NCBI GenBank assembly: GCA_965644315.1
Contig: CBFFRQ010000004.1
Span: forward strand, 1 to 24,105
Direction of reading: 5' to 3'
Origin: Caecitellus pseudoparvulus
Taxonomy: Eukaryota; Protista; Bigyra: Bicosoecida
Length of the DNA stretch: 24,105 bases
Below the pieces are notes generated by a model that saw only the letters and a program-made list of their open reading frames with translations, searched no databases and had not been told where the DNA came from. Both the position numbers and the translations under genes were made by a program. Below, in pieces: positions 1-24,105 of the stretch (position 1 is the first letter of the stretch; every line of letters starts with the position of its first letter).

Positions 1-3000
1 GACACACCGCTCTGCAGAACGGTGCGAGGCAAGGCGAGAGATGAAGATGAAAGGAGTCCCCAGTCTTGCATGCAGCTTCGCTGCAAAGTAAGGCCACCGT
101 CTTGGTTGCTGGTGAACTCCAGAGCGACTCGCCCTGCTCGAACAGCTGCACCACGTTTGATTGGCACGGTCTGGCACACAACTGCGTGAAGCGAAATGTT
201 CCCAGCACTTGCATCAGTTGCCGATCCGGCCGTGGAAATGTCAAGGTGTGAGCCTGCGTCTGAAAGCTGCACGGTGAGCTGGCTGACATCAGGAGGCGTT
301 GTATCAACCTGCACGCAGGGTGCCTGAACCGCGCCACTTGTCGCTTGCAAAGAGTTCGATACAGTCAACTCGGCGCAGTACGTTCCATCGCTGAGGGAAA
401 GCCCCGAGACAGAAGCGCTTCCAGCAGACGCGAGAACGGTGATGCTGCCAACAGGTGCACTCGTTTCATCCACCCACTGAACTGACACGTCTGCTAGGGA
501 CGAGTGCGGCTCAAGAATCGTGGCCAGCTCCCAGCTTACGGCAAGGGCACTTGAGTCTGCCTGCACCCCAGCATTGACTCCTGCAGAGCTGCTACTGTAG
601 ACCTGCGCAGACGACACGTCGGGCGGCGACCGGTCGATTCGCAGGGGGTCTGAAGTTGCAGTCGTGTTCAGCCCAACGCCGTTCACGACTGTGAGGGTGG
701 CAAACAGCGCATCACCATCAGCGCCGACTCCAAAAGCTAAATCATGCTGCGCTGCCGAGCTCATGAGGGTCTTGGGCATGACGTTGTCTGAATCTGGGGC
801 AGTGCCAATGTGAAGGAAGATGGCATGCACGTCACTTTCCTGGTCAGCGAAGCCCTCCCATGCAACAGCAAGATGGTTCGAAGCAGTTGCGAGCACAGGG
901 TTGAACGTGGCGTCCGTCGTCCCTGCAGCCAGCACGCTCTCCCCGAAGAATACTCGGCCACTTATAGGGGGAGTTGAGTCGATGGTGAAGGCAACGCGCT
1001 CTTCGGATCGCAGGCCCGCGCCGTTCTCACAAGAAACCAGAGTGCTGACACTGGCCAAGCCCTGAGCCGCTCCCAAGCCAAGAGGGATCGACAAAGTGCT
1101 GGACTTGTGCAATACCAACTGCTCTGATCCCAGCTGGGTTTGGTTCGCTGCCGTACCTGTGTGCAGGGAGCAGAAGGTCGGCGGGGTCTCGTCCTCCGCC
1201 ACGGACAACTGCAACACAGCGGCAGACGCGTCCACGACAAAGGAATTCGCCAGGTCTGGGTTGCTGGAGTCCAGCACGGCGGTGTTCGTCAGGACCGGCG
1301 CAGTGGAATCATACGTTGCGCCGTCAGACAGGGCTACAACGCGCTCGCCCAGGGGGTTGCTGGTCACAACAGCTGCAAATACTTGGACTCCCAGTGGGAA
1401 TCCGGGACCCACCTGGTGAACTGCAAAGAGAGCATCATCCACGCTCTTGAGGTTTGTGACGGTGCAGTTGGGTTCCCCACTTGGAAGCAGTGCCACGGCG
1501 CGCGTGAGGCACCACTCGTACGTGAAGTCTCCAGTCTGGAAACGGCCATCTTGCGCAGCTCCCCATGTCAGGTGAACAAGGGTGTCATGCAAGGCAGCAG
1601 TGTCAACTTCCTGCCCGGCTGGGCCGTCACTCACAGTCCCAGGCACGGTGACCGTTGTGCTGACTTTGCGTGGCCTGGAGCTGACGGGGGAAGTGGGCAG
1701 ACCAACTCCGTTGGTGGCTGTGACAACTGCCCTCACTCGTGCACCGTCGAAGACTGTCACTGCTGGGCTTTCAGCCCGCAGAGCGCCCTGTGCGTCAACA
1801 GCAGCATCCACGGTTGCAATGACAACATCCGTCCCGGGCGGCACAGACTCTGCGTCCCACACAAACTGGACGCGGGCAGCAGCGACACCTGACTGTGCAT
1901 CTGCGAAGGGCGTTGCTGCAACTGACAGTACAGCATCCGTTACGACGCCTGGCCACCCGCTCTGCGAGCTGAACCCAGTCGGGAAGGTGATGCGAGGGCG
2001 CAGCAGGCGTGCGCTGTCAGGAGAGACGACGGGTGGCGAAGTCTCCACAGCAACACCGTTGGAGCTGCGCTGACTGAGCAGGCCTGCGGTGTTGCGTACC
2101 TTGAATGTTGCGTAGTACGTGCCCTCTGGCAGGTCAGCGGAGGCTGTAAAGCTGCAGGTGAGCTGATCCTGACCAGCGGACAGAGCCAGGGGAATGACGG
2201 GTGAAGCGTCTGCTGCTCCAGGAGCAGTGCCGAAGAAGCACTCAACCGACTGGATCCCGGACTCGGAATCGATGGGGGCTTGCATGGTAGCGGCAAACTT
2301 CCGCACGCTGCGCTGAACGGCTGCATCGCCTCGAAGCGAAACCCCATCCACAACGGGCCCCAGCACGGGAGGCGTGAAGTCCACGAGAACGCCGTCGCTC
2401 CAGTGCACACTAGTAAGGCCTTGCCTGTTAGTTGCACGCACGGCAATCCTGTAATTCCCCGTGGTGAGCACTTCCACCGCTCCGCACTCGGCACTTGGGC
2501 TGATGGACAACCAGCTTGCTGGTTGCGTCCAATGGCTGCCGTTCAAGCGAGAGAAGCCGAGTTCAACAGCAGTTATAGTGGAGGCGTCTTCACTGCAGCT
2601 CCAGCACACCCCCAGCAGGCCTTGCTGCGCCCACATATCAACGTCTTGCCCTGGCACGGGCCCGTCCGTCGGAGTCTGGCAGGTAGGGGGTGTCACGTCA
2701 ACCGTGACTCCAGACGTCGCAATTTCTGTGCTCAAACCAGCCTTGTTAGTGGCCTTGAACTCGACCTTCAGCTGTGCTCCCTGTGATGCAGGTGGCATGG
2801 GCAGTGTGATGCCAGCTGCTGGGTCCCCTTCAACTGCAGTCCACGCGGTCACTGGCGACACAGCGCCTCCAGCCAAGGTCTCAACCACGCGGGCATCAAC
2901 GCCAGCAATGTTTGTCTCGCCATCAACAAAGGATGCCGTGGCACTCAAGTGGGTGGCGTTGGAGGTGAACTGCACATCCTCAGCCCCTACTCCATCCCGT

Positions 3001-6000
3001 GGCTCGAACAGCGACAGGGGGGGCGTCGAGTCCACGATGACGCCGTCTGAGGTGCAGACGCCCACGCTGCCCGCACCATTCGTGACAACGACCACCGTGT
3101 ACAGCTTCTCACCAGAGGGCAGCAGCACCCCCTGCTCCATGAAGTGGGCAGCTTCCCGAGCACTGGCGGGAGCGTCTTGCAGAGGCAGGAAGTCATCTGC
3201 CCCTTGCAGACGCCCGATGCCGTACTGCACACGCGCGACGCCGGACTCGGGGTCGGTAGCCGACCACTGCAGCCAGGGAAGGAAGGAAGAGGTGAAGTCC
3301 TCGTCAACGCCCTTCACAGGGCCGTCCCATGCGAAACACGAGGGGGGCGTGGTGTCCACACTCACCGGCACGGTGGATACTGCGTGGGACATGCCGATGC
3401 CGTTCACGGCTCGCACGAGTCCGTACACTGTCTGCCCATGCGCCAGATCCAGCCCCACCATGGCGGCCTGGGTGGACAGCGTGCCGCGTGTGAAGAACAC
3501 GATGTCAGCTGCTTCTGGCGTGGAGCCCAGCCCCACATCGTACCGCACAATGCCAGTCTGGTTGTCCGCGAAGCCCGCCCAGTGCAGGGTGAAGGTGGAC
3601 GTGCTGGAGATGAAGGTGCCTGAGGCTGGTGCGGCACCTGCCAGACCCAGACGGGCCCAGGCAGCGCCATCCACAGGCCCCGTATCGTCGATGAAAATAC
3701 CGTTGCTCCAGACACTGGTGGCCTGGCCTGCCTCGTCCACGGCCGTGACGCGCGTGAAATACGTCTGCTGTGGGGTGAGCGGGTCGTCTTGCAGGTCCAG
3801 CACCGTCCACTCTAGCAGCCCGACACTGTGGTCGGGCACGACGTCACAGGGGCCGTCCGCGGCGGTGGCAGCGCAGACACGGTAGTCCACGATGGAACTC
3901 TCCAAGTCCAGGAAGTTGGCCCAGCTGATGACCAGCACCTCCGTCATGCTCTGTGCGACAGCGTCTGCGGCGCCAGGCATGCCGTCCGTCACAATGCCCG
4001 GCAGGGGGGGGCGGGTGTCAATGAGGATCGTGCTGGGCACATCTACAATGCGCACCCCGCTGGCTTCGTTGTCACAGCGAATGTGCGCGTGCAGGGTGCC
4101 AGACTCAGGCAAGCTAGCGCCAGATACCGTGATCCAGTGTGTGCTAGATCGGGCCTGAGCTGCGGTTGGCAGTCGAGTTCGCAGCTGCAGTGCAGCAGAC
4201 AGCGTGTCAGCGAATATACTCCCAAAGCCCGGGTGGTGCACGCGCGGAGGCAAGCTCACAGACCCATCGGCGTATTGGTTCGCCCCCACAGGTGCAGGTA
4301 GCTGGCCTGGGAACAGCACAGCATTGTCTACAATGTCTGTGCCGCGGTAGTATGTTCCGATAGATGCTCTACAGAGCAAGTTGGCACTCTCCAGCTCCTC
4401 AGCGGTCCAAGTCAGAACCACCACATCGCTGCGGTCGACGACGGTGCGCCGACCGAAGGAGCTGTTTGTGAACAGTGCCAGGCCCTTGATATCCGGGGGT
4501 GTAGTGTCAATCGCGAAGCCAGGACTCCGGCTGGTTTGAGAGAGCTGGGCCGCGTTGATGCTTTGCACTGCGAAGCGATACTTGCCACCTTGCAGCAAAG
4601 ACTGGAAGGTAGGGAGAGAAGCTTCGTATGTCGTTGATGCTTGGGAGTTCGGAAGGGCGTAAACCGGCGTGACTCGCTCGCTTGTGGCGGCGTCCTCACC
4701 CCAAATGCGGTACTGAACAATGTCTGATTCGGCATCTGCTGCGGCCTGCCAAGTGCCGTGAAGCACGTTGGGCTCGTCCTGGAAGGTGAGCTGGAGAGAG
4801 GCAGCAGCCGGGTCAACGTTGGGAATGCCGCCTGCGCGGGAGTTGCCGTCTGCCACGGACGTGGAAGCTGGCGGGGTGGTGTCGATGACGACGCCGGACG
4901 TGGACATCCAAGACACCAATCCTGCCAAGTTCGTGGCCTTGATCGTAGTGAAATAGCTGTGGCCGTGCTGTAGGGGCTGGGTCAAATTCGACCAGCTCCA
5001 CTCTGTTGTTGTGCGTGGGAGGCGGACGGGCCCCGCCAGGTCGTGGAAGGACGGCCCGTCCAGGCTCGCAGCACACTCTCCTGAGTCCACTAGCCTGGCC
5101 ACTGTCGCCCGGCGAACCTTGTCACCGTCGAGAATCTCGGGGGAAATATCCCCTCGCTCATACCCGGCAACATCCGCACACTGCTCCACAGCGGCCGAAA
5201 AAGGCGCTCTTCCCAGGAACACTTCGAAGTGGGCGACAAAAGAGTCGGCGTCGAAGAAGCCAGCCGCCCAGCGACTGTGGATGCCGGCGGTGCTGGCCTG
5301 CGCAGCCACATCCACCCGGGGATTGCACAGGGTGGTCGTAAAGTTGCAGTCCAAGAAGCGGTACGGGCGGTCGGTCAGAGGCGGCGTGGTGTCAACCATT
5401 AGCCCGTCGCCCACCATCCACTCCTCTGCCCTGGCGCCGTTGCGCACTCGGACAGTGACAAAGGCCGGCATTTGAGCCTGCAGGTTGACGTTGCGTAGGA
5501 CAACTTCTTGCTGGTTTCGTTTGGGCAGGGTCTGCCAGGGGAGGATGTCGGCGCCACCCGGGGTGATGCCCACTCCCACCAAGATCTCCTCCACGCCTGA
5601 CGTCTCATCCCACGACTGCCATGCAGCGTGCAGGATGGCCCCAGAAGACGTGAAGTCTAGCTCCTGGGACAGGTACTCGGACGGCAGCAACGGGGCCTGT
5701 GTTCGGAAAGGATCGGCCGATGCCGGGTTACGCACAATGTCCGCGTAGTCGACGTCGGGGTCAACCTTCAACTCCCGTACGTTGAGAACACTTGCGCGCG
5801 TGGCGTCCACAATGAAGCCATTGGAGAAAGCTTCATCCCGCACACCTGCGACGTTGGCGGAGATGATGCTCCACCTGTACTCTGTCTCGTGCTGCAACAT
5901 GCCGTCAAGCGGCAGTGTGTACGCCCAAGACCTGGAAGTGCCCAAGTGCACATGCCGGCTCTCTCCGACGCGCGCAGGCACCATCATTCGGGATGGCTCG

Positions 6001-6848
6001 ACTTCCTCGAGGTTGACCCAGTAGTCAGTGACTTCTGAGCCTTCGCGGTCAACGAAGGACTGGAAGGTCACCGCGATGCGCTGTCTGGACGGCCAGAACG
6101 TCACATCTTCCCGCTCGCCCCAGCCCAGCGTGCCGCCGCTCTCGGAGATGATGCGGGGCAAGGCGGGGGTGTGGTCCACAAACAGAGCATGGCTTGTAAA
6201 CACTGCCTGCAAGCCCAAGCTGTTTGTGCTTTCCACATTTACCCAGTAGTATACGCCGTGCTGCAAGTCCAAGCCACCCGCTTCTGCGAAGTACCAGTCC
6301 GCGGACTTGCTGGCCATGAGGTCTTGCGAGCCAGTGTCAGCCCACGGCAGCACGTCATCCACGCCTTCCTGCGTACCGATGGAGAACCGGACCTGGGAGA
6401 TCTCTGCGTGCTCAGCAGGCTCCACGACTTTGAAGCGGATGGACAACACATCAGTGGCATTGATGACTTGGAAGTCGCCGTAGTTCAAGTACTGCCCTGT
6501 CGCCGCGTTCTTCACTTGGATATCCAGCACTTGAGGAGCGCTAGCATCGCAGACAAAGGGCACAGAGATGCCCGATGCAAGCCCTTCCACGTTTGCTGCA
6601 ACGACGCTGACAAAAGCTGGTGCGTCTTCACCTGGGCAGTCCACGCCATTGAAGGTGAAAGTTGTGATGTCTTCATCATCGAAGTACTCGGCAATGTCCT
6701 GCATCATGGGAGTTTTTCCCAGCGCAACAGAGAACTGCCGGACATAGTTCTCATCGTCATAGAAGCCCCCAAACTCCGTCACAACTGTCGTAGCATCCAC
6801 TTGCAGAGCCGAAGCGTAGGCTGCGTCAATTTCAGGTGGAGTCGTGTC
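1..6848 (-). repeat. Tandem array of at least 18 complete (+1 partial) FN3/Ig-like beta-sandwich repeats delimited by D-x-T-P-P linkers
   Basis: Linker Asp/Glu at about 6848, 6548, 6176, 5807, 5393, 4883, 4508, 4019, 3689, 3356, 3032, 2699, 2381, 2045, ~1662 (degenerate), 1310, 980, 635 and 305; spacing 300-510 nt. Recurrent consensus: DTTPP..DG..D..W-x-x-F-x-D-x-ESG[IV]..G-T-x-x-G-x-x-D[IV]..L-x-x-G-x-x-Y..V-x-A-x-N-x-AGL..S[DN]G. The repeat is visible at protein level only. Confidence 0.88.
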
Positions 6849-9800
6849 AGGGGGCAAGTTGCAGATCTTGAACAGCTCGGTGGTGTGCCACGCGTCGCCA
6901 TATGGCTTGTAGCTGGCAATCTCAAAAGTCTTCTCTGCGCACATGACGAGGCTGCACTTCGGCAGCTTGATTGTGGCGAAGCCGATCTTGATGCGGATGG
7001 GGCAGCAGGTGCACTTGATGCAGAGACGGAAGGCAAAGTATGCCTCAATAGTAATGGAGGGGTAGATGATGGCAAGATCCATGCTGAGACACAGGCGCAC
7101 CGCCCCCCCCGGGGTAATGCCGAATGAAGCGGTGGGAATGATGCCAAGCGAGAACAGGCGCACAACTGCTCGCACGCCGGCATACCCCAGTCCGACATCA
7201 ATTTGGATCGCAGCAGAGAAGAAGGGGGTCACAATGGGCACTAATGATGCAGCCAAGAGTTTCTCCTGCAGCAGAAGGGAGATGACGAGGTCCACCTTGA
7301 CCTCCACACCGGCATCGACGATGAGGAAGAGCGGGACGATGGGAACAGGAATGGGGTGCTTGAGGTGGAAAAAAAGGAAGGAACCTTCCATGAGCACCGA
7401 CGTTTCTTGGATGCCCGCGTCAAACTTCGGATCCAGAGCACCAACCTTTGGGGCTTCTGGCGTCAGGCTGGTGACCCCGCCAGGCTGCCCCACCTGCAGC
7501 TCCCGGGACTCGGTCAGGTGCACTGAAGGCTTGTTCAAAGCATCTGCAGCACCCAACAAACCTGGCTCCATCACGTGCGCCATTCGCACTCGCAGCTCGC
7601 GGCCATCCTCCGTCACGATCGTGACTGCTGGCAGAGAACCCTCTGTGCGGCCAGCATGCACCAGTTCAGCTGGAAGAGCAAGGTGCTCGACGTGGGGCGC
7701 CTCTCCAGCCTGCAGACTGCGCCTGTAAGGACTGACAGCGTGTGCCCGCCCCTCTTCGGCCAGGCGCCGGTTGAAGCTGTACTTGGGCCGCTGAGACACC
7801 TCCTTGCAGTAGTCCCCACCAACTGGCAGCAGGCAGCGAGGACCAATGTGAGAAAACAGCATGAACGGGGGCTTGTGCTGGCGCACCTTGAAGTACAGGA
7901 TGTTCTCAGTGAACTGTGGGTTCACATTTCGCACCACAGGCAAGCCCAGTTTGTACACGCTGTCGTCCCGCAGCGCCCCGATCCGCTGCACCTGGTCGTA
8001 CACATGGCTGGATCCAGACGACGTGAGGACAAGCAGGAAGGTCACATCCGTACCATCGTACATAGAGATGGACTCCATGCCTGCCGGCCCTCGCATCTTT
8101 AGTGTGGACGTCCCCAGGGACTGCTTGGACGACTGCCCCTTGGTGGGGGCTGTCTTGGAGGGCTTGGCATTGGGAGTGCGCTGGGCCGTGGAACCCTTGG
8201 TCTTTGACTGCCTGCGTTTCTTGAGCTTGTCAGGCTCTGGTGGCTGCACGAGCTTGTAGTGCTTTGCAGTCAACTGCTTGGAGGTATCCAGGGACAACAC
8301 CTTGCCCAGCACGATGCCGTCCTGGAAGGGCAGCAGTGTCGTGCCATCTGCCAGAGTGTGGAAGTCAAGAGCGCACGTGCTGCCATCACGAGTGTAGGTG
8401 CACCGGTTCACACCAAGATTCTTGAAGCCCAACTGGTCGTACACAATGAGACCCTTGATGCGGGCACCAGCACTGACAACCAAGTTTGGAGCAAGCACCT
8501 CCGTCTCCTCCACGGTGGTGGTCAGCGAGAAGTCTAGCCCACGTGGCATGCCGTTCAAACCGACCGTGTACCCAACCACCCAGCCCTTGTTGCACTTGCG
8601 CCAGTAGTTGTCCTCGCCATACTCGTCATTGCTCGGGCGCCTTGCAGTAGAACCGTGAGAGAACGGCCCGTATGGACCATGCGCACAGGCAGACGAGTCG
8701 TACTCATGCGAAACTGTGTGGTGAGCCGCTACATCCATAGTGTACGTGAAGTAGTTCTCCTGGCTCTCTTCATCGGCAGTGCGGGCGGGAGGGTCCTTGG
8801 CGTCCTCAGTATCTCCTTCAGCAGGGGGTGGCGTGCGTCCAGAAAGGCGCATGCGTGTGCTGGACCGCTGGCGGGGCTTGGCAGGCGGCTTGGGGGCAAA
8901 CTTGGGCTGCTTCGCGTCTCCCGGCTCGTAATACTCCCCGACCCACAGAATGCCTTCCGCATCGAATGACTCCCTGTCATAGAACAGCGAGTTGGCTTTC
9001 ACGTCCACCTCGATCTGCTCGCGCTTCGCGACAAGCTCCGCGAAGAGCGTCGAGTCGTCGCTGACCAAATCCATCAACTCGCTGTAGTCGAACGGCACGA
9101 TGTGGTTCTCACGCGCTGTTGACGGCAGGAACTTGCGCTCCACATCTGCTGCGGACCAGTCCGGCTTGTCAGAGCAGGTCCACAGAATGTCGTGGTCGGG
9201 GTCGATGGCGATGTCTGCCACGGAGCCCGTGTATGGTTCCTCCTCGGACGTCAGCAGGGAGACCACTTTCAGGATCTCCTCATCGTCATTCATGACAACG
9301 AGGATGCTGGCGGCGCCTTCGTTGGCCCCCACGCCGTAATACGACATGATGAAGCGCCGGTAGTCGATGGCCTCCACGCCCTGGGGCATCCAGTCCTCGA
9401 ACAGCCCAGGCACAGTGTACCGCCACTTGTCGTCGCGGCAAGGGTACCCGAAGATCTGGCACGAGCCAAAGGCAGGTGGGAAGTTCTGGTACCAGAAGTG
9501 CGTCATCTTGACGGCCATCAGGCCCGAGTACGTTTCGGCTCGCCGCTTGACGGTGTGAATGCAAGGCACGAACTCCTCGCACGGGGGCTCCAGTGCCTCA
9601 GGGTCCACCTCCCCTTCAGGGGTGCCGTTTCCGAGAAGTCGGCGCGCCTTGGCAACATAGCGTTGAATGATGTCAGCATAGCTCTCGACCTTGTCGCGCA
9701 CAGGCCGCACTCGGTCAACGACGCTTGTGGCGCCCTGCAGCACTTCCAGGGCAAGCTCCGGGATGCGGATGAACTTGTCTCGGGCAAGCAAGGCAAGCTT

Positions 9801-12800: not shown

Positions 12801-15800
12801 GTCCAAGGATGCCTTGAGCTCGTGCAGGTCCAGTGCTGTGGCGGGGCCACCCGCCACCACAGCGTGCGAAAACGCAGCAGCTGACGCCAACGCCCCCGCG
12901 AGGTCCTCTGCGAATTCGGATGCAGACGCAGCATCTTCCACTGCCGCGACGTCGGCCAAAGCCTGGTTGCTGGCAAGCGTCGCTGCAGCCCCTGCCGCTA
13001 TCGTCGACGCTGACGCGGGGTGCAGGGGGCTAGAGGTGTCAAGGCCCGGGACCTCAGGCAGCTCTGCGCCTGGGGCGGCAGTGGCGGCAAAGTACGTTGC
13101 CAGGTACCCAACCAGAGCAGGCACATCTTCACAGTCGCCAAATCGCAGGGGCATGGCGCTCAATGCGTCCAGTCCCGCCTCGGACGCATCCCAAGCGATT
13201 GGGATGCCAGTGTCCGCAGGGGCGGCCTCTGCAGCGGCGCTCAGCCAAGCAGCCAGTGCCGTGCTGGCCTGCACATGTGCGTGTGCAGCTGCTTGGGCGA
13301 CAGGCAGCGCTGCAGCCCAGATAGCAGCGCAGTCATCGGTTTCCCCAGTCCCAGCGCACATGCCAAGGATGGGGGTCGCATCCATGCTGTCCACGTACGC
13401 AGTCAGCGCGTCTGCGAGTGGCTGTAGGTCCTCCTGAGGCATGCTCTGCACTGCAGCGAGCACTGCTGATCCAGTGGCGGTAGCAGCGGCGCAAGCGCCG
13501 CCGTCGCTGGCCAGAGCGGCCACGTGAGCCATGGCAGGTCCAAACGTTGGCGACAGTCGCAGCGATGCCAGGGCAGTCTCCGCGAAGAACGACTGCAGCA
13601 AGGCAGCAGCAGCAGAGGTCTGGCTGGCGGCGGTGTCGATGAATAGGGGGTCGGCGTCATCTCCCAGAGCATCGTTGCAGGCAAGCGTGGAGTCCAGGAA
13701 GTCCGCAAGACGCGCGATGGCCCGCACCTGGCGCTGAGCTGTCAGAGACGTGGGCATGGTGGTGAGCTGGTCATCCGTGGTGGTGCCGTCAGAGCCAACA
13801 CGCTCGACAGCTTGCATCACCAGGGCAGACTCGGCGCAGAGGCCGGAACACGCAGCGACGGTGCTGTTGCACATGGTGTCAAGGCCGACCCGCACGAAAA
13901 CGCTTGGGTTGAGAATGGGGCCTGCCAGCGGCTGCAGGCGCGTGATTTCTGCCACGAGAGCTGCCTGGGCAGCATGCAGTGTGTCCATGACAGCAGGCAC
14001 GGTGTCTGCCGCGCCAGCTGCACCTTGCAGCGCGGCTTCTTCCAGCGCAGTCCCGAGCGACTCGGACGACTCCAGCATGAGACTGGCAAAGTCCAGAGCT
14101 TGGCCAATAGTGCCGACAGAACCAAGTGCGTCAGTTGTCAACTGTGTGTCGAGCATACTTGTTGCAATGGCGGCGTCCAACGTGTCCAGTGGGGGCACCT
14201 CCACAGAGCCCGTGTCGCCGCCCAGCGCAGCGGCAAGAAGCTCCACCTCTTCCAGCGGCAAGGCGAGCCCAGCACTCTGCACCGCCAGCATGTGGGGTAG
14301 AATACGCAGAACGTCGCCTTCGGGGTCTTCTTCGCCCGCTGTGGTGACGCTGCACTGCGTGAGGGCATCAGAGAAGGCGACACCCTCGTCGGTGGCGCCG
14401 AATGACGTGTCGTCTGCAGCCACGGCATCCAAAAGCTCCGCACATAGTGCGGGGACGCTCTGCACCAGCGCCAGTGTTGGGGCGTGGGAAGCAGCAACAC
14501 CGGCGTCAAAGGTCACCCCCTTGCTTGCGATTGCGGACAGGGCGGCGGCAGACGCCTCAGACACCAACTCCTGCGACACGGCCAGCCACTCCACAACATC
14601 CCCCGTGGTGGTGGCCAGCGACAGCTCAACCAGCTGCGCGGAGAGGCCGTCAATGGACTCCACTGTGGCAGCTGCAGCGTCCACATCTGCAGCTGCGGCA
14701 GTCTGGTGCCCGGTGGAGAGCAGAGAGAGGTGCAGGAAGGCGCCGCCAAGCTCCCAGGCCGCCACTGCTGCGCCCAGGTGTGCGCCCCACTGTACCTGAC
14801 TCAGGCACGACACGCAAGGCACATCGGCCAACCCAGCACCGTGCAAGGCCAAGGACTCGACGGGCAAGCTGGTTGACTCAGACGTCGCACCAGCTCGGTG
14901 CGCATACCCTGCCTCGGCGAACGTGCGCAGCACTGCAGGCTGCATGCTCGCAAGCCACACAGAACCTGCTGCGGCAGCCAAGCCCTCATGGTCAGCGCAA
15001 GCTGCTGTCACGGCGGACAAAGACGACAGAGTAACAGGTGCTCCGGCGCCAGTTTGTGGCGTGTCGGGGGCCACAGTCGCAGCAAGCTGGCTGGCGTGCA
15101 AGCTACCGAGCGTCGCATCGCATGCCTCCAGAGGTGTGGCCGACATGGCCGCAGCCAGCGCACCTGCTTCGACTGGCGACGACAGCAACGGCCCGTGCAG
15201 GGCCAGCATGGCGTCCTCCCACCCCTCCGGCATGGAGGCAGCCCACACTGCAGGCAAGGTTTCGGGGGCCTCAGTAGTGGTGGACTCACCCTCAGGCTGC
15301 AGCACCGCCAGTGCCCCCGTCGCGAGAATGTCGGAGACGGCCATGGGCAGCAGCTGCACTGCGACGACGGCAGCTGCCGTGTCGTGCACTGCCCGCAGCC
15401 AGGCTGTGTCGGCGGCGGCGGGAGACACGGCACGCAGCGCAGCTTGAGCAGCTGACAGGAGCTCAGCGAGCTCTGCCGCCTGCGCTGGCTGCACAGAGGC
15501 CACGGAAGTTCCAGCCCGCACCCACACGTCCAACGCGGCCAACACCGCCCCTAGTGCCTCGCTGGCCTCCAGCATGCCCGGCTCCGCATCAGCCAGTGTG
15601 GATGTGGCGGCATGGGCTGCTGTCAACGCGTCCACCGCATCAAGAATGTTCAGGCCTGCTCCGGTCAGCGAAGAGCTGGGCGTGGAGCTGCCGGAGGTGC
15701 CAGACCCCGGCGTCGTCGCAGTTGTCGTGGTCGTGGTCGTTGCGGTGGGCTCTGGTGACTCGGCCTCCGTACCGCCAGTGGTTTCCTCCTCATCACCACC

Positions 15801-18800
15801 AGTGCCAGTGGGCGACGTGGGGCTCGTGCCCTCAGTCGCGGTCGCACCCGTCTCGGTGCCGGTTGAGGAGGGCGTCGTGGAGGTGATGGGGTTGCCAGCC
15901 ACAGGCTCAAAGAAGGCGGTCGCCGCATCCATCACAGCGCTCTGAGCGAAGTCTGCACGTTGCAGCCCTGTGCTGGACAGGTACTGCAGCAGCAGGCCTG
16001 CTGGAGACTCAGAGTGCGGGAAGCCCAGCACTGCGCTGGAGGTGAAGGCCAGCACTGTGGCGGGCGCAAAGGCGCCCTCACCGTGTTCCTCCGTCAGTCC
16101 GGAGGTGCGAGCTGCCAGGGCGGAGCGCAGGGCCTGGCCCACATCAACAAGGATGTGTTCCTCCACCCCCGCAGCGACGAAGTGCAGGCAGCGAGTGAAG
16201 CTTGCCAGGCCGCTTGTCTGGGCCCACTCACCGGCCTGGTCGGCGATTGCGACGAGGTCGCCAGGCGACTGGGGAAAGTCGACCACGGGCTCGCCAAGCT
16301 CTGCGTCAAGCGGCTCAGGCTGCGTCACGGGCTCGCTGGCATCCAACCGCAGATGCACGGAGTCGGGGCTGAGGGCCGCCACTTCAAACACGCGCACAGC
16401 TTCCCAGTCCACTTCCACGTGCAGGGTCGCAGTCCACGCACAGTCGGCAGTGCACACTGTAAAGGCCGCTGCAGTGGGCCCGTCGCCCACGGCAGCAAGC
16501 CACGCAGGGGCGCTGTCTTCAAAGCCTGACGAGGACGCGAGGCCTGCAACAGTCAGCGCCTCCGGCACGAGCCAGGTCCGATCCAAGGTGAAGGCGCTCG
16601 CACAGGCTGAGGAGGCACACTCCCTGTCCAGAGCCAGAACGGTGCCGATGGGGAGCTGCCCCCAGGCCTCCAGCCCCGCCGAGCCCATGTCGTACGCCGT
16701 GGTGGGGGCCGTGAACACTTCCTCTGAGTCTGTCGGCGTCAGCACCTCCACTTCAACCGAAGCCGCGCCGAGGGCCAGCAACACGGCAAGCGGGGTATCG
16801 GGGAAGGACGCCAGGTCCACGCGCACGGCCGTGTGGGTGGAGGGGCCTGACAGGGCGGCTTGCAGGGCCATTGCAGCTGCCTTCAGAGACAAGGCACCAG
16901 ACAGGCCGCCTTCCCCGGCAGTGGCAGCGGCAGTTGCCGTCCCAGGCCCCGTCGCCACCGCCCCCACCAGGGCTGCCATGTCGTCGGCGAATGCGGAGAG
17001 GGCGGCGGTGCCCACGGTGGTGCCCAGGCCCACCATGTGTGGTGCATAGGCCGATGACAGCAGCGCAGCATGTGTGTGGGAGAGAGCGGATCCTGCGACC
17101 GAGTGGTCGGCAAGGGCGACCCGCCCAGCGACGCCGGCGCTCGTGAACTGCACTGAGGAGGCAAGCAAGAAGCGCTGCGCCGACACGGTGGCCATGTGGT
17201 GGGACACCTGTGCGACAGTGGCCGCAGCTTCTGCCAGGTCCGCCGTCTGACCTGCCAGGTGCGCGTGCAGTGCCGCGGCGATGAGAGGGGCAGGGCACTG
17301 TGTGCATGCGAGCAGGGTGTCGGCGGTGCTGGGCTGCAGTGCCTGGCCGCTGCTCAGTGCCCCAGCCAGCGCTGACATGGCGGCAGACTCCTGCGAGGAA
17401 GCCCCGGGCCAGGCCTGCGCCAGGGCGGTCTGCATCAACGCGGAAACTTCAGGTGCCGCCTGGGTGCTCGTGAACACGCCCCACGCAGCCGCTGACAGCT
17501 GCGTCGCAGTGGCGTGGCTGGCTTGCGTGAAGCCGGTCGCTTCCACAGCTTCGCCACCCGAGAGCTCTGCAAAGTTTGTGATGAGCCGCTCAGCCCAGGA
17601 TCGAGAGTTGAACTGGGCGGCAGCGGCCTGTGCCAAGGCCGCCCCATGCACGCGGGTGCTGAGGAAGACAGAGTCAGCATCGCCGCTTGCCGCAAGGTGG
17701 GCCAGGGCTTGCCGCAGCATGGGCAGATCCCCCAGCACCAACTGCACTTCTGAGTCGGAGCCCCAGCGGCCCAGAGCACTGGCGGCGACATTGGACAGTG
17801 TCGACACCAAGACTGCCTGCCTGTGCGGCAGGGCAGCTGTGGCCACAGACGCCAGGAAGCCCGCTGAGGCGAGGAAGCCAGAACAGGCTGCACTGACGCA
17901 CTGCAAGTCGCCCTCCGACACTGCGCCCAGCAGTTCGCTCTGTGCCTTGGCCCAGAGGCGTGCGTCGCCAGCGAGGGCAGCGGCAGAGGCCACTTGCCCT
18001 GCGGGCATGTGAAGGTGGGCGGAAGCGGCGGGCCTGCAAGCCCACTCGAGGCTGGCGCCGAGAACGGTGACCACTTGGTGCGCCACCTCCCACGGCAGGT
18101 CGAGTTGCTCAGGGCATACCACCTTCTCGTCCACCTTTGTGAAGGATACAGTTTCGACGCCCGGCGCCGAAAAGCCCTTGGAGGACGTCTTGCCCAGAGA
18201 TGCCTGCACGGTGCAGGAGTCGAGGTCCACTTCAGCACTGGCGGCGGTGCCTGAGGCCACGAGCTGCTCCAAGGCGCTGTGCGACTCGTGCAATTCCGTG
18301 CATGTGCCCGGTGCCCCTGCAAGGGCCAGCTTGGCGGCTGAGAGGATCTCGTGCATGCCAAGCGCAGTTGCCTGCTCCGTTGGGATGGAATCCAGCCACG
18401 CGAGTACAGACTGCGACACGCCGTGTCGGTGGGCCTCTGAAAACTGCGTCTGGGTCTGTAGCGCACCCACCATGCTCATTATCCCAGCCACATTGGCGGC
18501 ACCCTGCAGCGTTACCAGGGCGGGTTGACCGGCGTGGTCGGGGCCGGGCAGCACTGCCCACAAGGCGCTCTGCAGCGCAGACGCCGCCCCGTCGTCCCCC
18601 GCATCCACTTGCTGCACAGCCACAGCGTCCAGCACGAGGGAGTTCATCACCGATGTGCCCAAGGCCGCGCTGGCGCCGGTGGGGGCAACCAGCGTGCCGG
18701 GGTTTGATAGCAGCCAAGCCGACGCCACAGCCAACCGGCCAGCCACATCGGCACCCACTGCACATGGCCCCGCTGCGCAAGCTTCGGCAGCCAGCGAGAT

Positions 18801-19676
18801 CTGGGCCAGGCGCTGCTGTGCGGTGGCAACGTCGTTTGTCAAGGTGTCGGCCAGGTACTGCCCGGCCCAGTGAGCTGCGCTGGCCAGTGTTTCTGGGCGC
18901 AGGCTTGCAGCGTGCACGCCAGAGTGCGGCACGAGGAACACGCGCAGAGCCAGGGTAGCGGGAGCCATGATGTCCACCCACGGTGGGCTGCAGGTGAGGG
19001 TGGGGCAGTCTGCCCCGCCGACCAGCCCGCGGAGGCCACTGGTCACAGCTTCCCCGGCACTGCCCATGCCAGCAATGTCGGCCGCAATGAACTCAGGGCG
19101 AAGGGTGGCCTGGGCACGCCACACGGCACTGATGAATGCCCGCATGGCGTCTGCCAGGGCTGTCAGCGTGGAGGGACCAGCCTTGAGTGCGACAGAGGCA
19201 GGGAAGCCGTCTGCACAGACACCGGTGCAGGGCAGTGCAGCGGCGAGGGAGGTGGACACGGTGGTGCCGGCGCTGACCAGGTCTGCCACGCCGTCCATCA
19301 CGGCTTGCAGGTCTGCCGAAATGCCGTACTCCCCGATGAAGTGCTCTGTCAGCTGGCTCTGCGTCTCCCTGGCCAGCTGCAGGAACGCCTGCACTGTGGC
19401 CTTCACCTGTAGCTCGCGGAAGGCGGCGGCGAGGCCCTCTGCCGCCTGCAGCTGCACTGACGCAGACAGCAGGGCAGCTGCACTGGTCAGGCGCTCGGCG
19501 CTTTCGGCGCTGGGGCTTGTCCATGTCGGCACGTGTGAGTTGACAATCGCGCCAGCGGCGGCGGCATCCAGCGCTTCCGTGGCGCCAGCAGCCTCCGCAG
19601 CGGCCTTCAGGCCAGCTGCCACCAGGTGGTTGTGCAGCGCAACGTGCATGGGCTGCATGGCGAGGGCGCCCACTTG
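1..19676 (-). CDS. Downstream segment of the giant gene: stop-free frame of 6,558 codons running off the left edge (absent from the ORF track)
   Basis: Hand translation found no stop. The ORF track lists no minus-strand ORF in this frame below 19704, whereas an in-frame stop would have produced one. The translation gives coherent domains, e.g. YTVPGLFEDWMPQG, LWVGEYY, VDTTPP, WAGFADNQTGI, ATNLAGL. Confidence 0.93.
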
Positions 19677-22600
19677 CCCCCGAACACCAAGCCGGCCACA
19701 ACTTCAGCCAGCGTGCCCTGCTCTGTGGGAAGCCCCAGTGCAGTGAGCACTCCATCCGGCACGGCATTGCCGCCCAGCAGCGCTGCGCCACCGACGAACT
19801 CTGCGTTGCCCAGACGTCGGAACGCCTTTGTTTCCGCTGCCGCCAGAACGTGGGCGGCATCCTGTGTCAGTGCCAGGAGAGGTCCCATGTCCACCGGCAC
19901 GGGATCCGTCAGCGTCACCATCAGCTCGACACTCCAGTGCTCGGCTTGACCACCTGCACTCAGCTCCACCAGCTGCTGCGTGAACGTCGCAGCCTCCTCC
20001 ACGCTGGCGACCGCCATGGCTTCGACGCGGAAGGGGGGGGACAAGTCTGGCCACAGCGCTGTGAGGTTCCCTGCCAGACTGGCTGACAACTGGAACAGGT
20101 GAGCCACGGAGCCGCCGATGGCGGGACTCAGGGGCGAGACTGCAGTCAGTGTGTCTGCAGCCAGGAAGGCGTCCACTGTGTCTGCCAGCAACATGCTCTG
20201 GGCTGCCCCGCCTTCCAGCGCCACACTGCCCTCGCCGGCCTCCAGCGCGCTCACCACCGACGCGGCGGTGGATGTCAGGATGTGGCTGGCCACAAGGGCC
20301 GCCTGCACAGCAGGCACGTCTGTCAGCAGCGCCACCAGCGGCGACGCAGCGAACGTCGACAGGGCTGCTTCGGCTGCACCAGGACTGCTCGCCGCTGCCT
20401 CACCGTCAAACAAGTCTTGCAGCGTCAAGAGCAGTGAGTGGGACACGGTGAAGTTCTTGCTGCGGTACACATGCACCTGTCCTGCATGGGCGCACTGTGA
20501 GAATTCAGGGGCCTCCAGCGGAACTGAGGTGGCGTTGACTGCCACCTGCGCAGCCGCCGCAATGGAGCGCAGGCTCTCAAATGCGTCCGCAATGCACGGC
20601 CGGTGCTGCGCAACGTGCGGGAAGTAGCCACTCACGGTGTCCACAGCAGCCAGGACCGCCGCCTCGTCCAACACCTCGGGCTGCTCTGCGTCCTGTGCGT
20701 TCGTGTCCCAATCCTGCAGCAGCGCCAAGGCTGTCAGCGCAGCCGGGTGGGACTGTGCCTCGACCAGAGCGGCTTGAGTAGAGGTCAAGTCGCCCACAGC
20801 GGAACACACAGCGTGCCAGAATGGCTCAGACTCAGGGGTGGAGGGGACGCCCCCGCCGCATTCGGCTGGCAGCGCCGATGCAATGGCTGTTTCGACTGCC
20901 CCTGCTGCAGTGCTGATGGCGTCTGTGAGGCCGGCGATGCCCAGATCATCTGCCGCTGCAGGCGTGTTGAAGACCTCAAGCAGCGCACGGGGTGCGTCCA
21001 GTGGCGTGATGGCATCCTGTGCTGCAGCGCAAACTCCGGCCATGCCCGAGGCAGCGTTTGCTGAGCGCGCGCCCACCGCACGCAGCGACAGGGGCACCAT
21101 GCTCGCCGTGCTGGAGCCCTGCAACCACGTGCCGATGCGCACAGCGCCGTCCAGCAGCCCTGAGCCAAACTCCAGAGAAGCATGGTCCAGCACTGCGGCG
21201 ATGGTGTCAGCTGCCACCTGCATGGCACTGCCAATGGCTTGGATGTCAGAGCAGCTGTCTGTAGCTGTCGGCACCGCCGCGAGGGTCGCAGAAGCGACCA
21301 CTGCGTCCCTGGTCACATTCTGTGCGACTTCCAGCTGGTGGGTGAGGTATTGGGCCAGGTTCCCAGCCGCGTTTACGCCCACCGCGGTGGCAGCTGCGCG
21401 GAACTCGGCTGTGGCCGTGCCTCGTGCGATTCGGCGCCCAATGGTCGCTGACCACTCCTGCCCGAACGGGGCCGCAGGGAACGACGTTGTGCTGAGCGCA
21501 ATGCATGCGGCGCTGATCACACCACGCTTGTGAGGCGCTGAGCCGCTGCACGGCTCCGCAGCGGGGAGGGGTGTGACGCTTTGAGCTGGGAGCTGGGGCT
21601 GGACGCCACCAGGCCGCACGTCCATCAGCTGCGCGGCGATGCTCCCCAACTCCTGAGTCGCAGCTCCCATGGACTGCAGCGTCGCATCGTGTGCTTGGAT
21701 CGCGGCCAGGCCAGATGGGGCTGCCAGTGAAATGAGCATTGCGGGGGTCAGCCCCAAGTCCACGAGGAGCGTCTCATGCACCGGGAACTGCTGCTCGGCG
21801 TCGTTCTGGTGCGCGAGGTGCAGGAGCAGCAGTCTGTCCAGCTGCTCAGCCCAAGCGTCGGCACCTTGGGTGAGGGCGGCGACTGAAGGCTGGAGATCTC
21901 CGAAGCGCCCGGCTGCAGCACGAGGGAAGGATGCAGCGGGGACCTCTGCCAGTTGAAGTGCGAGCGGCATGATGTCCACTCCTGTCTCCAGTACAGAGCG
22001 CGTCGTGTCGAGCTGCAGGAGCCACTCGAGAAAGTGCCGGTCGTCAACACTGGCGGAATAACGGGTGACAGTGGCAGCTGACGTGAACACATTGCCCCTG
22101 GCGACGGAGCAACCTGGCGTGCGAAGCAACGAATGAAAAAAGCGGAAGCACAGCAGAGCGCCCTGCAGGGCGGCAGCGGCGCTGGACTGCCAGTCTGCCA
22201 GCGCGGAGGCGCAGGCAGCCGCCAGCACTGCAGAGGCGTTCCCTGCTGCTGCACGGTGGTTCACGCCGCACTGCACGGTGGACGGTGACAGGGCATCGAA
22301 CGTGGCCGAGCTGTTGCCTCCGATGACTTGAGCGAGATCCCAAGCGGTCTGCACGCCAGGCTGCACGCTGCTTGCACTGGCGCCAGGATTGCCCCAGGCT
22401 TCGATGGTGTCAGCGACCAAAGCAGTCGCATTGGACAGCGCGCCGATGTAGCCATCGTAACTCACGATGGGCTCGCTCAGAGTTGCATCCTCGGGCGTTC
22501 CACTCGTCCACAGCACCATGGTACGCAGCACTGCCGCATGCAGCGACATGGAGGCAATGATTTCCCCACATCCCTGGGTTGTGCAGTCGGACTGCAGAAC

Positions 22601-24105
22601 GCCCAGCGCCGATTCAGCCAGATCTGCCGAGCCTTGCAGCTCCAGCAGCTTCTTGTTGCCACCATCTGCAAGCTTCTTCAGATCCTTCACGTGGGTCTTC
22701 TTGCGGTCTTGCTTGTTCAGGAGCCCCAAGTTGTACTTGACCTGCGGTCCCAGACGCTCCATAAGGGGCACCGTCAAGTTGCGAGCTTGCTGGACGAGGG
22801 CAGTCAGCGACAGCATGGCGGCGTCCAGACTTGGCGAGAACGTTGCCAACTCCGATCGCAGAGCCAGAGCGCTCGCCTTGAAGTCAGACTCTGCTGCAGA
22901 AAGAGTGACCCGCACCGGTGCGACTGGCACCGCCCATGCAGCGGCGGCAGCCAAAGCCGGGGCATTCTCCGGCGCGAACTGCTGCAAGACCTGATCTTTC
23001 GTGCCTTCCAGCGTGTCTTGCGTTACTTGCAAATCCGCCAGTGCTTGGACCGCAGCGCGTGCAGCTTGACTGGCAGCCGACGCAGTCGCCCCGTGCAGCG
23101 CAAGCGACGAGCCAGCAGCACCAGCTGCCTGAACTGCCGCGTCCAGAACGTCGCTGGCTGCCCGCAACAGGGCAGGCTGCAGATTCCTCCACTGCTGCAC
23201 CAGCGTGCTGTGGGTCCACTCGCGCAAGGCGCCCTCCAAGCGTGCCAAAGCTGAGCGAAGGGACGTGGCAGTGTGCAGAATACGTGCAGGCGCGCCGTCC
23301 ACAGCAACAGGGGTGGAGAGGACACTGGCCCCAGACATGGCTTCCTCTGCTGCAGACAGCAAGGCCGCCGCTTGGCGGGCGACACTGCGCAAGTTGAGAG
23401 AAGGCAGCGTGGCCAGCACAGAGCGCACGAGCGCCAGGGCATCCTCGGCGAATGCAGCGGCGGTTACGCGAAGCCCGTCAATGGCCACAAAGAGGGTATT
23501 GTCCAGGGCGCCACTTGCGAATGCCTCAGCTTGGACGGCAGCGGCCCAGTCTTCTGCAGCTGCCAGCGCAGATTCTGTGGAAGACGCCAGGGACGCTTGC
23601 GCTGTGCCCAGTTGGTCGACGTAGCGCGGCCTGAACTCGGCGATGAGGGAGCCGACCAGAGCCCCGAACGGATCTGCCGCCATCTCTTCTGCTGTGCCCA
23701 CTTCCAGAGTTGTCGCGTGGGTCTTGAACTCCACCATGGTGTCAGCTAGGAAGCCGTCCAGCGCTGCGAACTGGTCATTGTACGCGTCCAGCTCGTTGCC
23801 GCTGGCGCCGTTCATCACTTCCAGAGCACCAGTGACATCATCACCGATGACAGCGGCGAGGGTGCCAGCAATGTCGTCCAGCAGGGAACCCGATCCACTG
23901 AGCACCTTGTGCACAATCTGGATACCATTGCGAACCAGGGTTGCGTTGGACACCAGTCCGTCAGTGAACTCTCTCCCTCGCAAGATGACCTTGTCCACGA
24001 CATCCAGCACCGACAGCACCCGATCCCCGTATGACGTGATATTTGAGTACCACTCATTCAAATCGTCCAGGTGGCCCTGGATCATCTCGATCACGGGGGG
24101 TCTGC
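1..24105 (-). CDS. Giant (~8,030 aa or more, partial at both ends) putative extracellular/cell-surface protein: helical stalk + beta-propeller + beta-sheet domain + tandem FN3-like DxTPP repeats; one apparent frameshift at ~19679
   Basis: Two long overlapping minus-strand frames (24103->19607 and 19703->left edge) cover the whole window. The protein reads naturally across the junction (...AEVVAGLVFG|GQVGALAMQPMHVALHNHLVAAGLKAAAE...) with the same Ala-rich composition on both sides. The frame is open at both window edges. Confidence 0.85.
6849..7400 (-). other. Hydrophobic long-stranded beta-sheet domain with Cys-rich C-terminal hairpin
   Basis: FLFFHLKHPIPVPIVPLFLIVDAGVEVKVDLVISL...IQIDVGLGYAGVRAVVRLF...RLCLSMDL...ITIEAYFAFRLCIKCTCCPIRIKIGFATIKLPKCSLVMC...FKICNLPPDTTPP: alternating hydrophobic pattern, 8 Cys. 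Confidence 0.6.
7935..9430 (-). other. Beta-propeller-like domain with two low-complexity insertions
   Basis: Ordered motifs YTVPGLFEDWMPQGV, FIMSYY, SILVVMN, YTGSVADIAID..ILW, ANSLFYD..LWVGEYY, GWVVGY, ARIKGL, GPAGMESI..LLVLTSSGS..DDSVYKL: short strands with WD/YWTD-like blade character. Fold assigned by pattern recognition, not by search. Confidence 0.6.
9645..11850 (-). other. ~730-aa amphipathic alpha-helical (apolipoprotein/helical-bundle-like) region
   Basis: Continuous i/i+3/i+4 hydrophobic periodicity, rich in V/L/I/D/K with few Pro, e.g. LRTVLVSLANRIADEVQGVVDLGIEKLSNFTGVILDKVESF and VVDMIRGLVQGLIDRLEGLISSWVEVL. Confidence 0.65.
15660..15900 (-). repeat. Thr/Ser/Gly/Pro/Glu-rich mucin-like low-complexity linker (~80 aa)
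   Basis: GNPITSTTPSSTGTETGATATEGTSPTSPTGTGGDEEETTGGTEAESPEPTATTTTTTTATTPGSGTSGSSTPSSS. Confidence 0.85.
19674..19684 (-). other. Apparent 1-nt frameshift in a G5 homopolymer (coding strand TTC GGG GG CAA GTG)
   Basis: The upstream frame stops at TGA 19609-19607, and the downstream frame opens after TGA 19706-19704. Adding one G at 19677-19681 gives F-G-G-Q-V-G-A-L and fuses the two frames. Confidence 0.75.
19679..24105 (-). CDS. Upstream segment of the giant gene (listed 1495-aa ORF; frame open to the right edge; last ~23 aa KWAPSPCSPC... probably off-frame)
   Basis: ORF 19607..24094 is Ala/Leu-rich and helical with many N-x-S/T sequons (NIT, NAT, NLT, NSS, NAS, NVT, NFT). The GTG 'start' at 24094 is preceded by in-frame AGA CCC CCC, so it is not a demonstrated start. 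Confidence 0.9.

Follow-up and report, generated by a model that had tools for sequence, protein, structure and literature searches.

A 24-kb window from Caecitellus pseudoparvulus covers the middle of a gene for a putative membrane-anchored giant protein

The window, i.e. the whole stretch of 24,105 nucleotides analysed here, is the middle two-thirds of one gene, which encodes a protein of ~12,500 residues (~1.3 MDa). The main exon is a single open frame of 37.3 kb (12,430 codons) on another contig of the same assembly, C34 (G000:C34:141007->103718). The original prediction had called for one protein of ~8,030 amino acids or more, with a mass of ~0.8 MDa or more. That a single giant is encoded holds true; its size, however, is ~12.5k residues according to the C34 frame. 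Anchoring at the cell surface, which had also been proposed, is supported by the continuous C34 frame, a C-terminal transmembrane (TM) helix with a tail and a candidate signal-peptide exon upstream. The window contains the following features:

3..24103, minus strand: coding sequence for residues ~1064-9098 (giant exon of 12,430 codons), from stop-free frames and codon-position bias
23696..24103, minus strand: end of the conserved N-terminal head, residues ~1064-1199, with long helices in the AF2 model
19677..19681, no strand assigned: C5 homopolymer (G5 on the coding strand), apparent frameshift site; C6 in C34 and three other data sets
11994..23695, minus strand: paralog-specific region, residues ~1200-5100 (~3,900), rich in Ala/Leu/Ser/Thr, acidic, moderately helix-biased and non-repetitive
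9630..11993, minus strand: conserved bundle of long amphipathic helices, residues ~5101-5888
8235..9521, minus strand: six-bladed beta-propeller-like domain, residues ~5925-6353, AF2 pLDDT 64-93
6849..8234, minus strand: beta-rich, Cys-containing region between propeller and repeat array, residues ~6354-6815, from composition
3..6848, minus strand: first 18 of 31-32 FN3-like repeats, residues 6816-9098, with DxTPP boundaries; the array extends past the window

Reading frame, homopolymer run and exon structure

A six-frame stop count revealed two frames without stops, both on the minus strand (24103->19610, 1,498 codons; 19703->3, 6,567 codons), while the remaining four contain 101-234 stops each. 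The two open frames meet at the C-run, which bears out the predicted uninterrupted coding stretch of ~24 kb. Splitting them there gives 1,474 and 6,560 codons, in agreement with the 1,475 and 6,558 given beforehand, and the 19676->3 frame has no in-frame stop. The remark that this frame is mostly invisible in the ORF track is likewise correct, as the ORF list omits frames running off the window ends, and both ends are open, as expected, within the complete frame of C34. GC1/GC2/GC3 periodicity is even throughout the coding frame. The 40 strain differences listed comprise 23 synonymous and 17 non-synonymous ones; codon position 3 holds 23 of the 40. Contigs with 95-99% identity to the window occur in 22 of 30 bins of a marine RNA library, although they could be DNA carry-over.

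At the CCCCC of the window, contig C34 reads CCCCCC and its frame stays open. The window corresponds to C34:113715-137821 and is identical over 24.1 kb except for this indel, the sole internal difference, and the contig's five terminal bases. An extra C behind position 19676 is also present in X5, X7 and X15 (marine metagenome, related organism, marine metatranscriptome). The frameshift most likely arose from an assembly error of one base in a homopolymer, and the affected contig, that of the window (C4), would be best explained as a redundant fragment of the assembly with the unique middle part of one gene. A genuine frameshift in the strain, by which this copy would be a broken or truncated allele or represent two genes, is very improbable. 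The window itself carries C5, and run X3 from the same organism shows C5 at a depth of ~63 without the C6 form. However, the X3 contigs have many further 1-nt deletions, as is typical of homopolymer errors, and C6 is read both in C34, in otherwise identical sequence, and in three other data sets; moreover, the surroundings of the junction show neither a start codon nor a signal peptide nor a TM helix. Two separate genes were rejected on account of the continuous C34 frame, its C6 and the extra C in the other data sets. As a practical warning, the assembly was broken up by repeats between paralogs, which left redundant contigs that contain homopolymer errors.

Outside the window, a TM helix at residue 12,236 is followed by WRSGRAR and a tail of 168 residues. 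A signal-peptide-like exon candidate lies 386 nt upstream of the giant exon, in another frame, in both the gene of the window (giant1; candidate ATG at C34:141393) and its paralog g2. A similar one upstream of paralog C66 has the motif V-x-[VE]-Y-E-W in common, and a search of the 2.5-3 kb upstream of paralog C2 revealed none. Many GT..AG pairs are compatible with an intron between signal-peptide exon and giant exon. Where giant1 and g2 differ, the differences are concentrated in ~150 nt that separate the two exons, and this clustering supports the putative splice. The predicted product is acidic (pI 4.55) and, judging from its sequence, a putative type I single-pass surface protein: the short upstream exon would supply the signal peptide, and the positive residues beyond the TM helix would place ~12,200 residues on the outer side of the membrane and the 168-residue tail in the cell. 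Elsewhere in the genome, the actin match is split, i.e. introns are present.

Domain order and the paralog family

From the N- to the C-terminus, the protein consists of a conserved head, the paralog-specific region, the amphipathic helix bundle, a six-bladed beta-propeller, the beta/Cys region, FN3-like repeats and PKD-like domains. This agrees with the order outlined from the sequence at first sight (alpha-rich region, long amphipathic helices, beta-propeller, beta/Cys region, DxTPP-bounded FN3-like repeats). What had been termed a helical stalk is a paralog-specific, moderately helix-biased region, whose role as a stalk is conjectural. The AF2 models are low in overall confidence (mean pLDDT 51 and 56). 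In the helix bundle, which has an alpha hydrophobic-moment ratio of 3.3-3.6, AF2 places helices of 40-115 residues at pLDDT 50-75; a sequence search of PDB with it gave helical-bundle noise only. The beta/Cys region is collinear and conserved among the paralogs.

No other part of the family is as widely conserved as the propeller, on which the remote HMMER matches centre. Every top match in a Foldseek search with its model is a propeller. VIA superposition on solved six-bladed propellers gave Z 10-12 and rmsd 3.3-5 A (~4 A) for 170-220 aligned residues, over a model range of ~760-1190 with low-confidence loops, which leaves the blade count provisional. On the strength of the model, the domain is thus predicted to adopt a six-bladed beta-propeller fold. 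No Pfam propeller family (YWTD/kelch/NHL/WD40) matched, even at E 10.

An iterated repeat HMM delineated 31-32 units of ~105 residues each at residues 6,816-11,287, plus two later units. With 18 of them inside the window, the proposed count of 18 or more is confirmed. The repeat at residues ~7,492-7,601 matches Pfam fn3 (PF00041) with 46.7 bits (cut-off 25; E 3.8e-12). Near the TM helix and outside the window, residues ~11,900-12,000 match K319L-like_PKD (PF22352) with 60.3 bits (cut-off 27). Pfam REJ reached 20.5 bits, under its cut-off of 25, and inspection of the ~200 residues before the TM helix disclosed no Cys-rich HL-T-like GPS motif; on these two grounds, membership in the polycystin-1/PKDREJ family was rejected.

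The upstream exon and the giant exon served as individual queries. Across all tiles, Pfam returned fn3, PKD-type domains and weak Ig matches only. A PDB sequence search with four tiles and two profiles gave no match or helical-bundle noise, and an ESM Atlas feature search with two tiles gave no usable match. In a protein-homology search whose scope is limited by the length window of the tool, the propeller tile had one match, the head alignment none, and the tile from the paralog-specific region no relative among 5.8 billion proteins. As had been anticipated, no characterised protein with the full architecture turned up in PDB sequence, protein-homology and literature searches, the last of which yielded no description of such a protein; the suggested resemblance to uncharacterised giant proteins of marine invertebrates was not found. 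At the level of these comparisons, ~6,300 residues, about half of the protein length, appear to be without a characterised relative.

The 30.6-Mb genome harbours four collinear giant paralogs, each with a TM helix, which form a small, uncharacterised family. The end of the head is conserved in g2, C2, C66 and the Porphyra-assembly scaffold. Giant1 and its inverted neighbour g2 form an identity mosaic: near-identical segments flank the window on both sides, and these arms stop exactly at the window borders. Gene conversion between the inverted neighbours would keep their common parts nearly identical. Pieces of the same genes are found in public databases under algal names and misannotated, e.g. 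as "rad50".

The paralog-specific region is still coding according to codon-position bias and GC periodicity. It is low in entropy, cannot be aligned between paralogs and has no similarity to any paralog or to the homolog on the Porphyra scaffold; permissive phmmer comparisons between the paralog-specific regions gave scattered, non-collinear compositional matches only, and nothing was found in Pfam, PDB or Atlas. Divergence of this module between strains is modest (~2.2% at the DNA level), with more synonymous than non-synonymous changes, and thus gives no indication of diversifying selection in this species.

Proposed function and competing readings

We consider it fairly probable that the protein is a membrane-anchored giant in which an Ig stalk carries distal modules with a role in adhesion or recognition, the paralog-specific modules giving specificity and gene conversion maintaining the common parts. 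About 36 Ig-like domains, FN3-like and then PKD-like, would form the membrane-proximal stalk and hold the propeller, the helical bundle, the ~3,900-residue module and the alpha-solenoid head far from the surface, on a filament that may be hundreds of nanometres long. From this architecture we infer a likely role in adhesion to, or recognition of, surfaces, prey or other cells. The four paralogs, with a common scaffold and each with a middle module of its own, might then each have a different specificity.

A mainly structural protein of the surface coat or matrix (as spacer, in the glycocalyx, or for attachment of a wall or scales), lacking a particular ligand and with the paralog-specific region as a fast-drifting spacer, would fit the acidic pI, the long Ig-like stalk and the low-entropy, Ala/Ser/Thr-rich middle region that cannot be aligned across paralogs. 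Yet the middle region is kept between strains with a synonymous excess, and the conservation of propeller and head is suggestive of binding modules. We therefore regard a purely structural role as improbable.

The head could also point to another function. If it were truly related to the large lipid transfer proteins (LLTPs: apoB, vitellogenin, MTP), adhesion would give way to the binding or capture of lipids by a protein tethered to the membrane, which seems doubtful to us. The AF2 model of the head has N-terminal beta strands and then an alpha-solenoid (barrel region at pLDDT 50-66), followed by a highly conserved, beta-amphipathic-looking block (alignment A1 positions ~805-955, giant1 residues ~850-1,000) modelled at pLDDT 22-26. 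Foldseek ranks lipovitellin 1lsh at 6 (E 6.5e-4) and honeybee vitellogenin at 17 and 32. When 48,161 chains were scanned without bias, lipovitellin 1lsh came at rank 20 (Z 10.3), the beta-alpha-1 part of apoB-100 (9bd1) at rank 26 (Z 9.9) and MTP (8eoj) at rank 31 (Z 9.6); lipovitellin and apoB-100 are the only rows of the scan that start at model residue 1. In addition, MTP 6i7s spans model residues 9..761 (Z 12.2), and Vitellogenin_N is present in two Atlas HEAT clusters. However, generic ARM/HEAT solenoids outscore the LLTPs with Z 12-14.7, and the alignments have rmsd values of 14-17 A, or 4.5 A for MTP over the solenoid only. Pfam Vitellogenin_N (PF01347) matched none of five heads, even at E 10, and had no match in the whole genome, the latter a weak test with control genomes equally silent. 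The modelled likeness of the head to apoB and vitellogenin is thus only a lead.

Returning to the adhesion and recognition reading, a bolder version of it would be a modular surface-receptor system in which a gene-converted scaffold (head, helical bundle, propeller and Ig stalk) carries, in each paralog, a module of ~3,600-4,900 residues for which neither the paralogs nor billions of public proteins offer a detectable relative. This module would be a specificity cassette that either diverges extremely fast or was acquired independently, and the head would be the first LLTP-type lipid-binding module known outside animals. We judge this version unlikely as a whole. The pattern itself, conserved and presumably gene-converted scaffold parts around huge paralog-specific modules, is unusual and may illustrate a way in which surface recognition is diversified among protists. 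The gene is also a concrete, checkable case of a putative megadalton, single-exon surface protein from a marine protist with a small genome.

Comparison with known giant and modular proteins

A putative type I topology and membrane-proximal, PKD-like Ig-fold domains are shared with KIAA0319/K319L-like and polycystin-1/PKDREJ-type proteins. The giant differs from the polycystin type in having one TM helix rather than a channel-like C-terminus, and its N-terminal part of 6,300 residues has no counterpart in PKD-domain ectodomain proteins. With LLTPs it has N-terminal beta strands, an alpha-solenoid and a secreted or lumenal context in common, all of them predicted, and all solved LLTP representatives rank within the top 31 of 48,161 chains against the head model; LLTPs lack the TM anchor and the Ig stalk predicted for the giant. 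They have been described as animal proteins (PMC1783640). Should the head prove to be LLTP-like, the superfamily would extend beyond animals.

As for the propeller, its likeness to the six-bladed propellers of receptors (LDLR/LRP6 YWTD, NHL, paraoxonase-like) is at the level of the fold, whereas its consensus motifs (alignment A2) differ from YWTD and kelch. In animal usherin, ADGRV1 and hemicentin and in bacterial adhesins of the MpIBP/SiiE type, the distal binding modules are carried far away from the cell surface by Ig-fold domains in tandem, tens of them per protein. The giant resembles such Ig-like/FN3-stalk adhesion proteins in its tandem Ig-fold domains and its megadalton size range; PDB sequence, protein-homology and remote HMMER searches revealed no sequence relationship to them. 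Its solenoid head, paralog-specific module, helical bundle and propeller differ from the distal modules of the FN3-stalk adhesins, and in place of the bacterial secretion and anchor system of MpIBP/SiiE-type adhesins it would use a eukaryotic type I anchor.

Two open frames and one homopolymer run

The minus strand of the window carries two long open frames, one running without stops from 24103 to 19610 (frame 1, 1,498 codons) and the other from 19703 to 3 (frame 2, 6,567 codons), whereas each of the other four frames contains 101-234 stops. The uninterrupted 24-kb coding stretch of the original prediction is thus confirmed, and it is mostly absent from the ORF track because that listing leaves out frames running off the window ends. 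Chance can be ruled out as the origin of the open frame, since a run of 6,567 open codons would be vanishingly improbable even if stops occurred only once in 80 codons. The GC1/GC2/GC3 pattern (~0.7/0.5/0.7-0.8) is even throughout the frame, and 23 of 40 listed strain differences are synonymous, with 23 of 40 at codon position 3 of the proposed frames.

Frames 1 and 2 overlap where the window has five consecutive C (19677-19681). The window is the full contig C4 of a 30.6-Mb, 215-contig genome, and C34:113715-137821 on another contig is identical to it over 24.1 kb apart from this run, where C34 has six C, and a difference within the final five bases of C4. With six C, C34 holds a single uninterrupted frame of 12,430 codons on the minus strand (141007 to 103718), so that both window ends are indeed open and the protein is longer, as had been proposed. 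The run was checked further with public contigs aligned to window 16800-22600. The sixth C recurs in X5 (marine metagenome), X7 (related organism) and X15 (marine metatranscriptome); one X7 contig covers the whole interval with 130 substitutions and the C-run as its sole gap. The data set from the window's own organism (X3) has five C, alongside numerous other 1-nt deletions, which are the signature of homopolymer errors. We are therefore highly confident that the frameshift arose in assembly and that the frame is a genuine coding sequence under purifying selection.

Giant paralogs and a redundant contig

The gene spanning the window (giant1) is one of four collinear giants in the genome, each a single open frame ending with a transmembrane helix and a tail.

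Giant genes of the Caecitellus pseudoparvulus genome
C34:141007-103718, minus strand: giant1, 12,430 codons
C34:179230-214746, plus strand: g2, 11,839 codons
C2:37519-78039, plus strand: C2 giant, 13,507 codons
C66:357311-394330, plus strand: C66 giant, 12,340 codons

All four align collinearly over the head (~300-1,200) and from ~5,100 to ~11,700, while giant1 residues 1,200-5,100 gave no alignment to any paralog, even at permissive settings. The inverted paralog g2 lies ~38 kb from giant1, with which it shares 95-97% DNA identity in three segments (C34 137763-141922, 116622-117753 and 106181-113722). The window is exactly the interval separating the outer two segments, and C4 is therefore a repeat-bounded redundant unitig. 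Another contig, C172, appears to play the same role for g2; that it duplicates the g2 unique stretch (~C34:182.4-202.4 kb) was deduced from identical search scores. C4, with its homopolymer error, and C172 are each flanked by near-identical segments common to the inverted paralogs. Gene conversion would hold the shared parts of this pair uniform. Between the two giants lies a further open frame of 5,367 codons (C34:159943-176043, minus strand), with a C-type lectin domain in its first 1,014 residues (Pfam Lectin_C, E 8.7e-12) and, in its later part, weak FN3-like repeats in common with giant1.

Gene ends and architecture of giant1

In the long giant1 frame, the sequence after the earliest Met codons does not resemble a signal peptide. 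A candidate signal-peptide exon begins at an ATG at C34:141393, 386 nt upstream and in another frame, and encodes MNILNRLPLALLACCCLLWAAQG followed by VEVYEW. The same exon is present in g2, and the C66 giant has a similar one at a distance of 467 nt upstream, which opens like a signal peptide and continues with VWEYEW; a search of the 2.5-3 kb upstream of the C2 giant found none, and exon 1 searched by itself matches no Pfam family. Giant1 and g2 differ little in the upstream exon and at the start of the long frame, their differences being clustered in the ~150 nt between (10, including one 3-nt indel). This sequence pattern fits a putative intron of ~110 nt, and together with the g2 and C66 exons the clustering supports a two-exon gene. 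The mature protein would comprise ~12,500 residues (~1.28 MDa, pI 4.55). Directly upstream, an open frame resembling Ser/Thr protein kinases (HRDLSLENVVL ... DFG; C34 ~142064-142915, minus strand) marks the upstream limit of the gene.

Architecture of giant1 (residues of the long exon, minus strand of C34)
~46-1,200: conserved head, AF2 mean pLDDT 50.6, confident stretches 70-88
~1,200-5,100: paralog-specific region, non-repetitive, Ala/Leu/Ser/Thr-rich, acidic
~5,100-5,890: helical bundle, strongly amphipathic helices of 40-115 residues
~5,925-6,353: beta-propeller, pLDDT 64-93
~6,354-6,815: beta/Cys region
6,816-11,287: FN3-like array, 31-32 units of ~105 residues each, DxTPP at the boundaries
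as far as ~12,100: PKD-like domains (K319L-like_PKD, 60.3 bits)
C-terminal end: transmembrane helix and cytoplasmic tail

This architecture matches the domain order predicted from the window (helical part, amphipathic helices, propeller, beta/Cys, FN3-like), and 18 of the 31-32 array repeats fall there, in agreement with the 18 or more expected. Every top Foldseek match of the propeller region is a propeller, and six-bladed propellers (paraoxonase, NHL, YWTD) gave VIA Z 10-12 at an rmsd of ~4 A. REJ scored below the Pfam cut-off in giant1. Near the C-terminus, at residue 12,236, lies a hydrophobic helix; behind it come WRSGRAR and an acidic tail of 168 residues rich in Ser and Pro.

The predicted structure of the head begins with N-terminal beta strands, followed by an alpha-solenoid (model 213-820), a CxxxC-rich helical stretch, a low-confidence conserved block and long helices. 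The head could be a true homolog of the large lipid transfer proteins (LLTPs; apoB/vitellogenin-like), which we regard as unlikely. Foldseek with the head model placed lipovitellin at rank 6 (E 6.5e-4) and honeybee vitellogenin at ranks 17 and 32. Lipovitellin, apoB-100 beta-alpha-1 and MTP ranked 20, 26 and 31 in a scan of 48,161 chains, where the former two were the sole rows taking in the N-terminal strands, and the MTP 6i7s alignment spans model residues 9-761. The motif after the candidate signal peptide (V-x-Y-E-W ... G-L-x-C) is reminiscent of the first strands of LLTPs. However, generic ARM/HEAT solenoids outscore the LLTPs against this model, the LLTP matches have large rmsd values, and Pfam Vitellogenin_N has no match in any head; nor has it any in the whole genome, a weak test, as control genomes are equally silent.

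The most conserved head block (giant1 ~850-1,000; positions 805-955 of the head alignment; on C34, outside the window) has dozens of residues invariant in the four paralogs and a homolog on a Porphyra-assembly scaffold. It looks beta-amphipathic, at an AF2 pLDDT of just 22-26.

Relatives, variation and probable role

Judging by sequence searches, the family is rare outside this genome. Tile 5,164-6,363 has 24 matches among 1.84 billion representative proteins, four of them strong. Two of these (CAE7529749.1 and CAE7856105.1, 96-97.5% identical to g2 and giant1) carry the organism name "Symbiodinium sp. KB8", and one of the two is annotated as "rad50, partial"; another, at ~50% identity, lies on Porphyra umbilicalis assembly scaffold KV919277.1 (70% GC), collinear with giant1 on either side of an unalignable middle region. 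The giant on this scaffold is frameshifted. All three are probably wrongly annotated DNA of associated or contaminating protists. Distant relatives (25-30% identity) occur on metagenomic contigs, one adjoining typical eukaryotic genes. In a search of 5.8 billion proteins that was restricted by protein length, neither the paralog-specific tile nor the head alignment had a match.

A 21.7-kb ENA metagenome scaffold encodes, within a compact co-directional gene array, a 4,031-residue protein combining HEAT repeats, a relative of the helical-bundle/propeller region and an fn3 array; the scaffold may be bacterial, viral or eukaryotic. On a 52.9-kb Logan contig of SRR23287145, two gene calls of 2,884 and >5,498 residues divide a distant family member between them, and an Ephrin_rec_like/fn3 gene of 3,110 residues and a RINGv-FHA gene adjoin it. 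The contig points to giants of this type in a second lineage of eukaryotes.

Between strains, the paralog-specific module differs by ~2.2% at the DNA level with synonymous changes in excess, and is therefore paralog-specific rather than hypervariable within the species. In a marine RNA library, 22 of 30 bins include contigs 95-99% identical to the window, a finding consistent with expression, with DNA carry-over as the alternative source. Given its long Ig-like stalk and membrane topology, the protein would form a surface filament with its propeller, paralog-specific module and head displayed far out from the membrane. As read from the sequence, its most likely role would be adhesion or recognition, with specificity set by the paralog-specific modules.

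Giant surface proteins on Ig stalks are an already known kind, and the giant1 family gives no sign of a new mechanism. New here are an N-terminal part of ~6,300 residues that has no characterised relative and the unusual pattern of a constant scaffold combined with a paralog-specific module.
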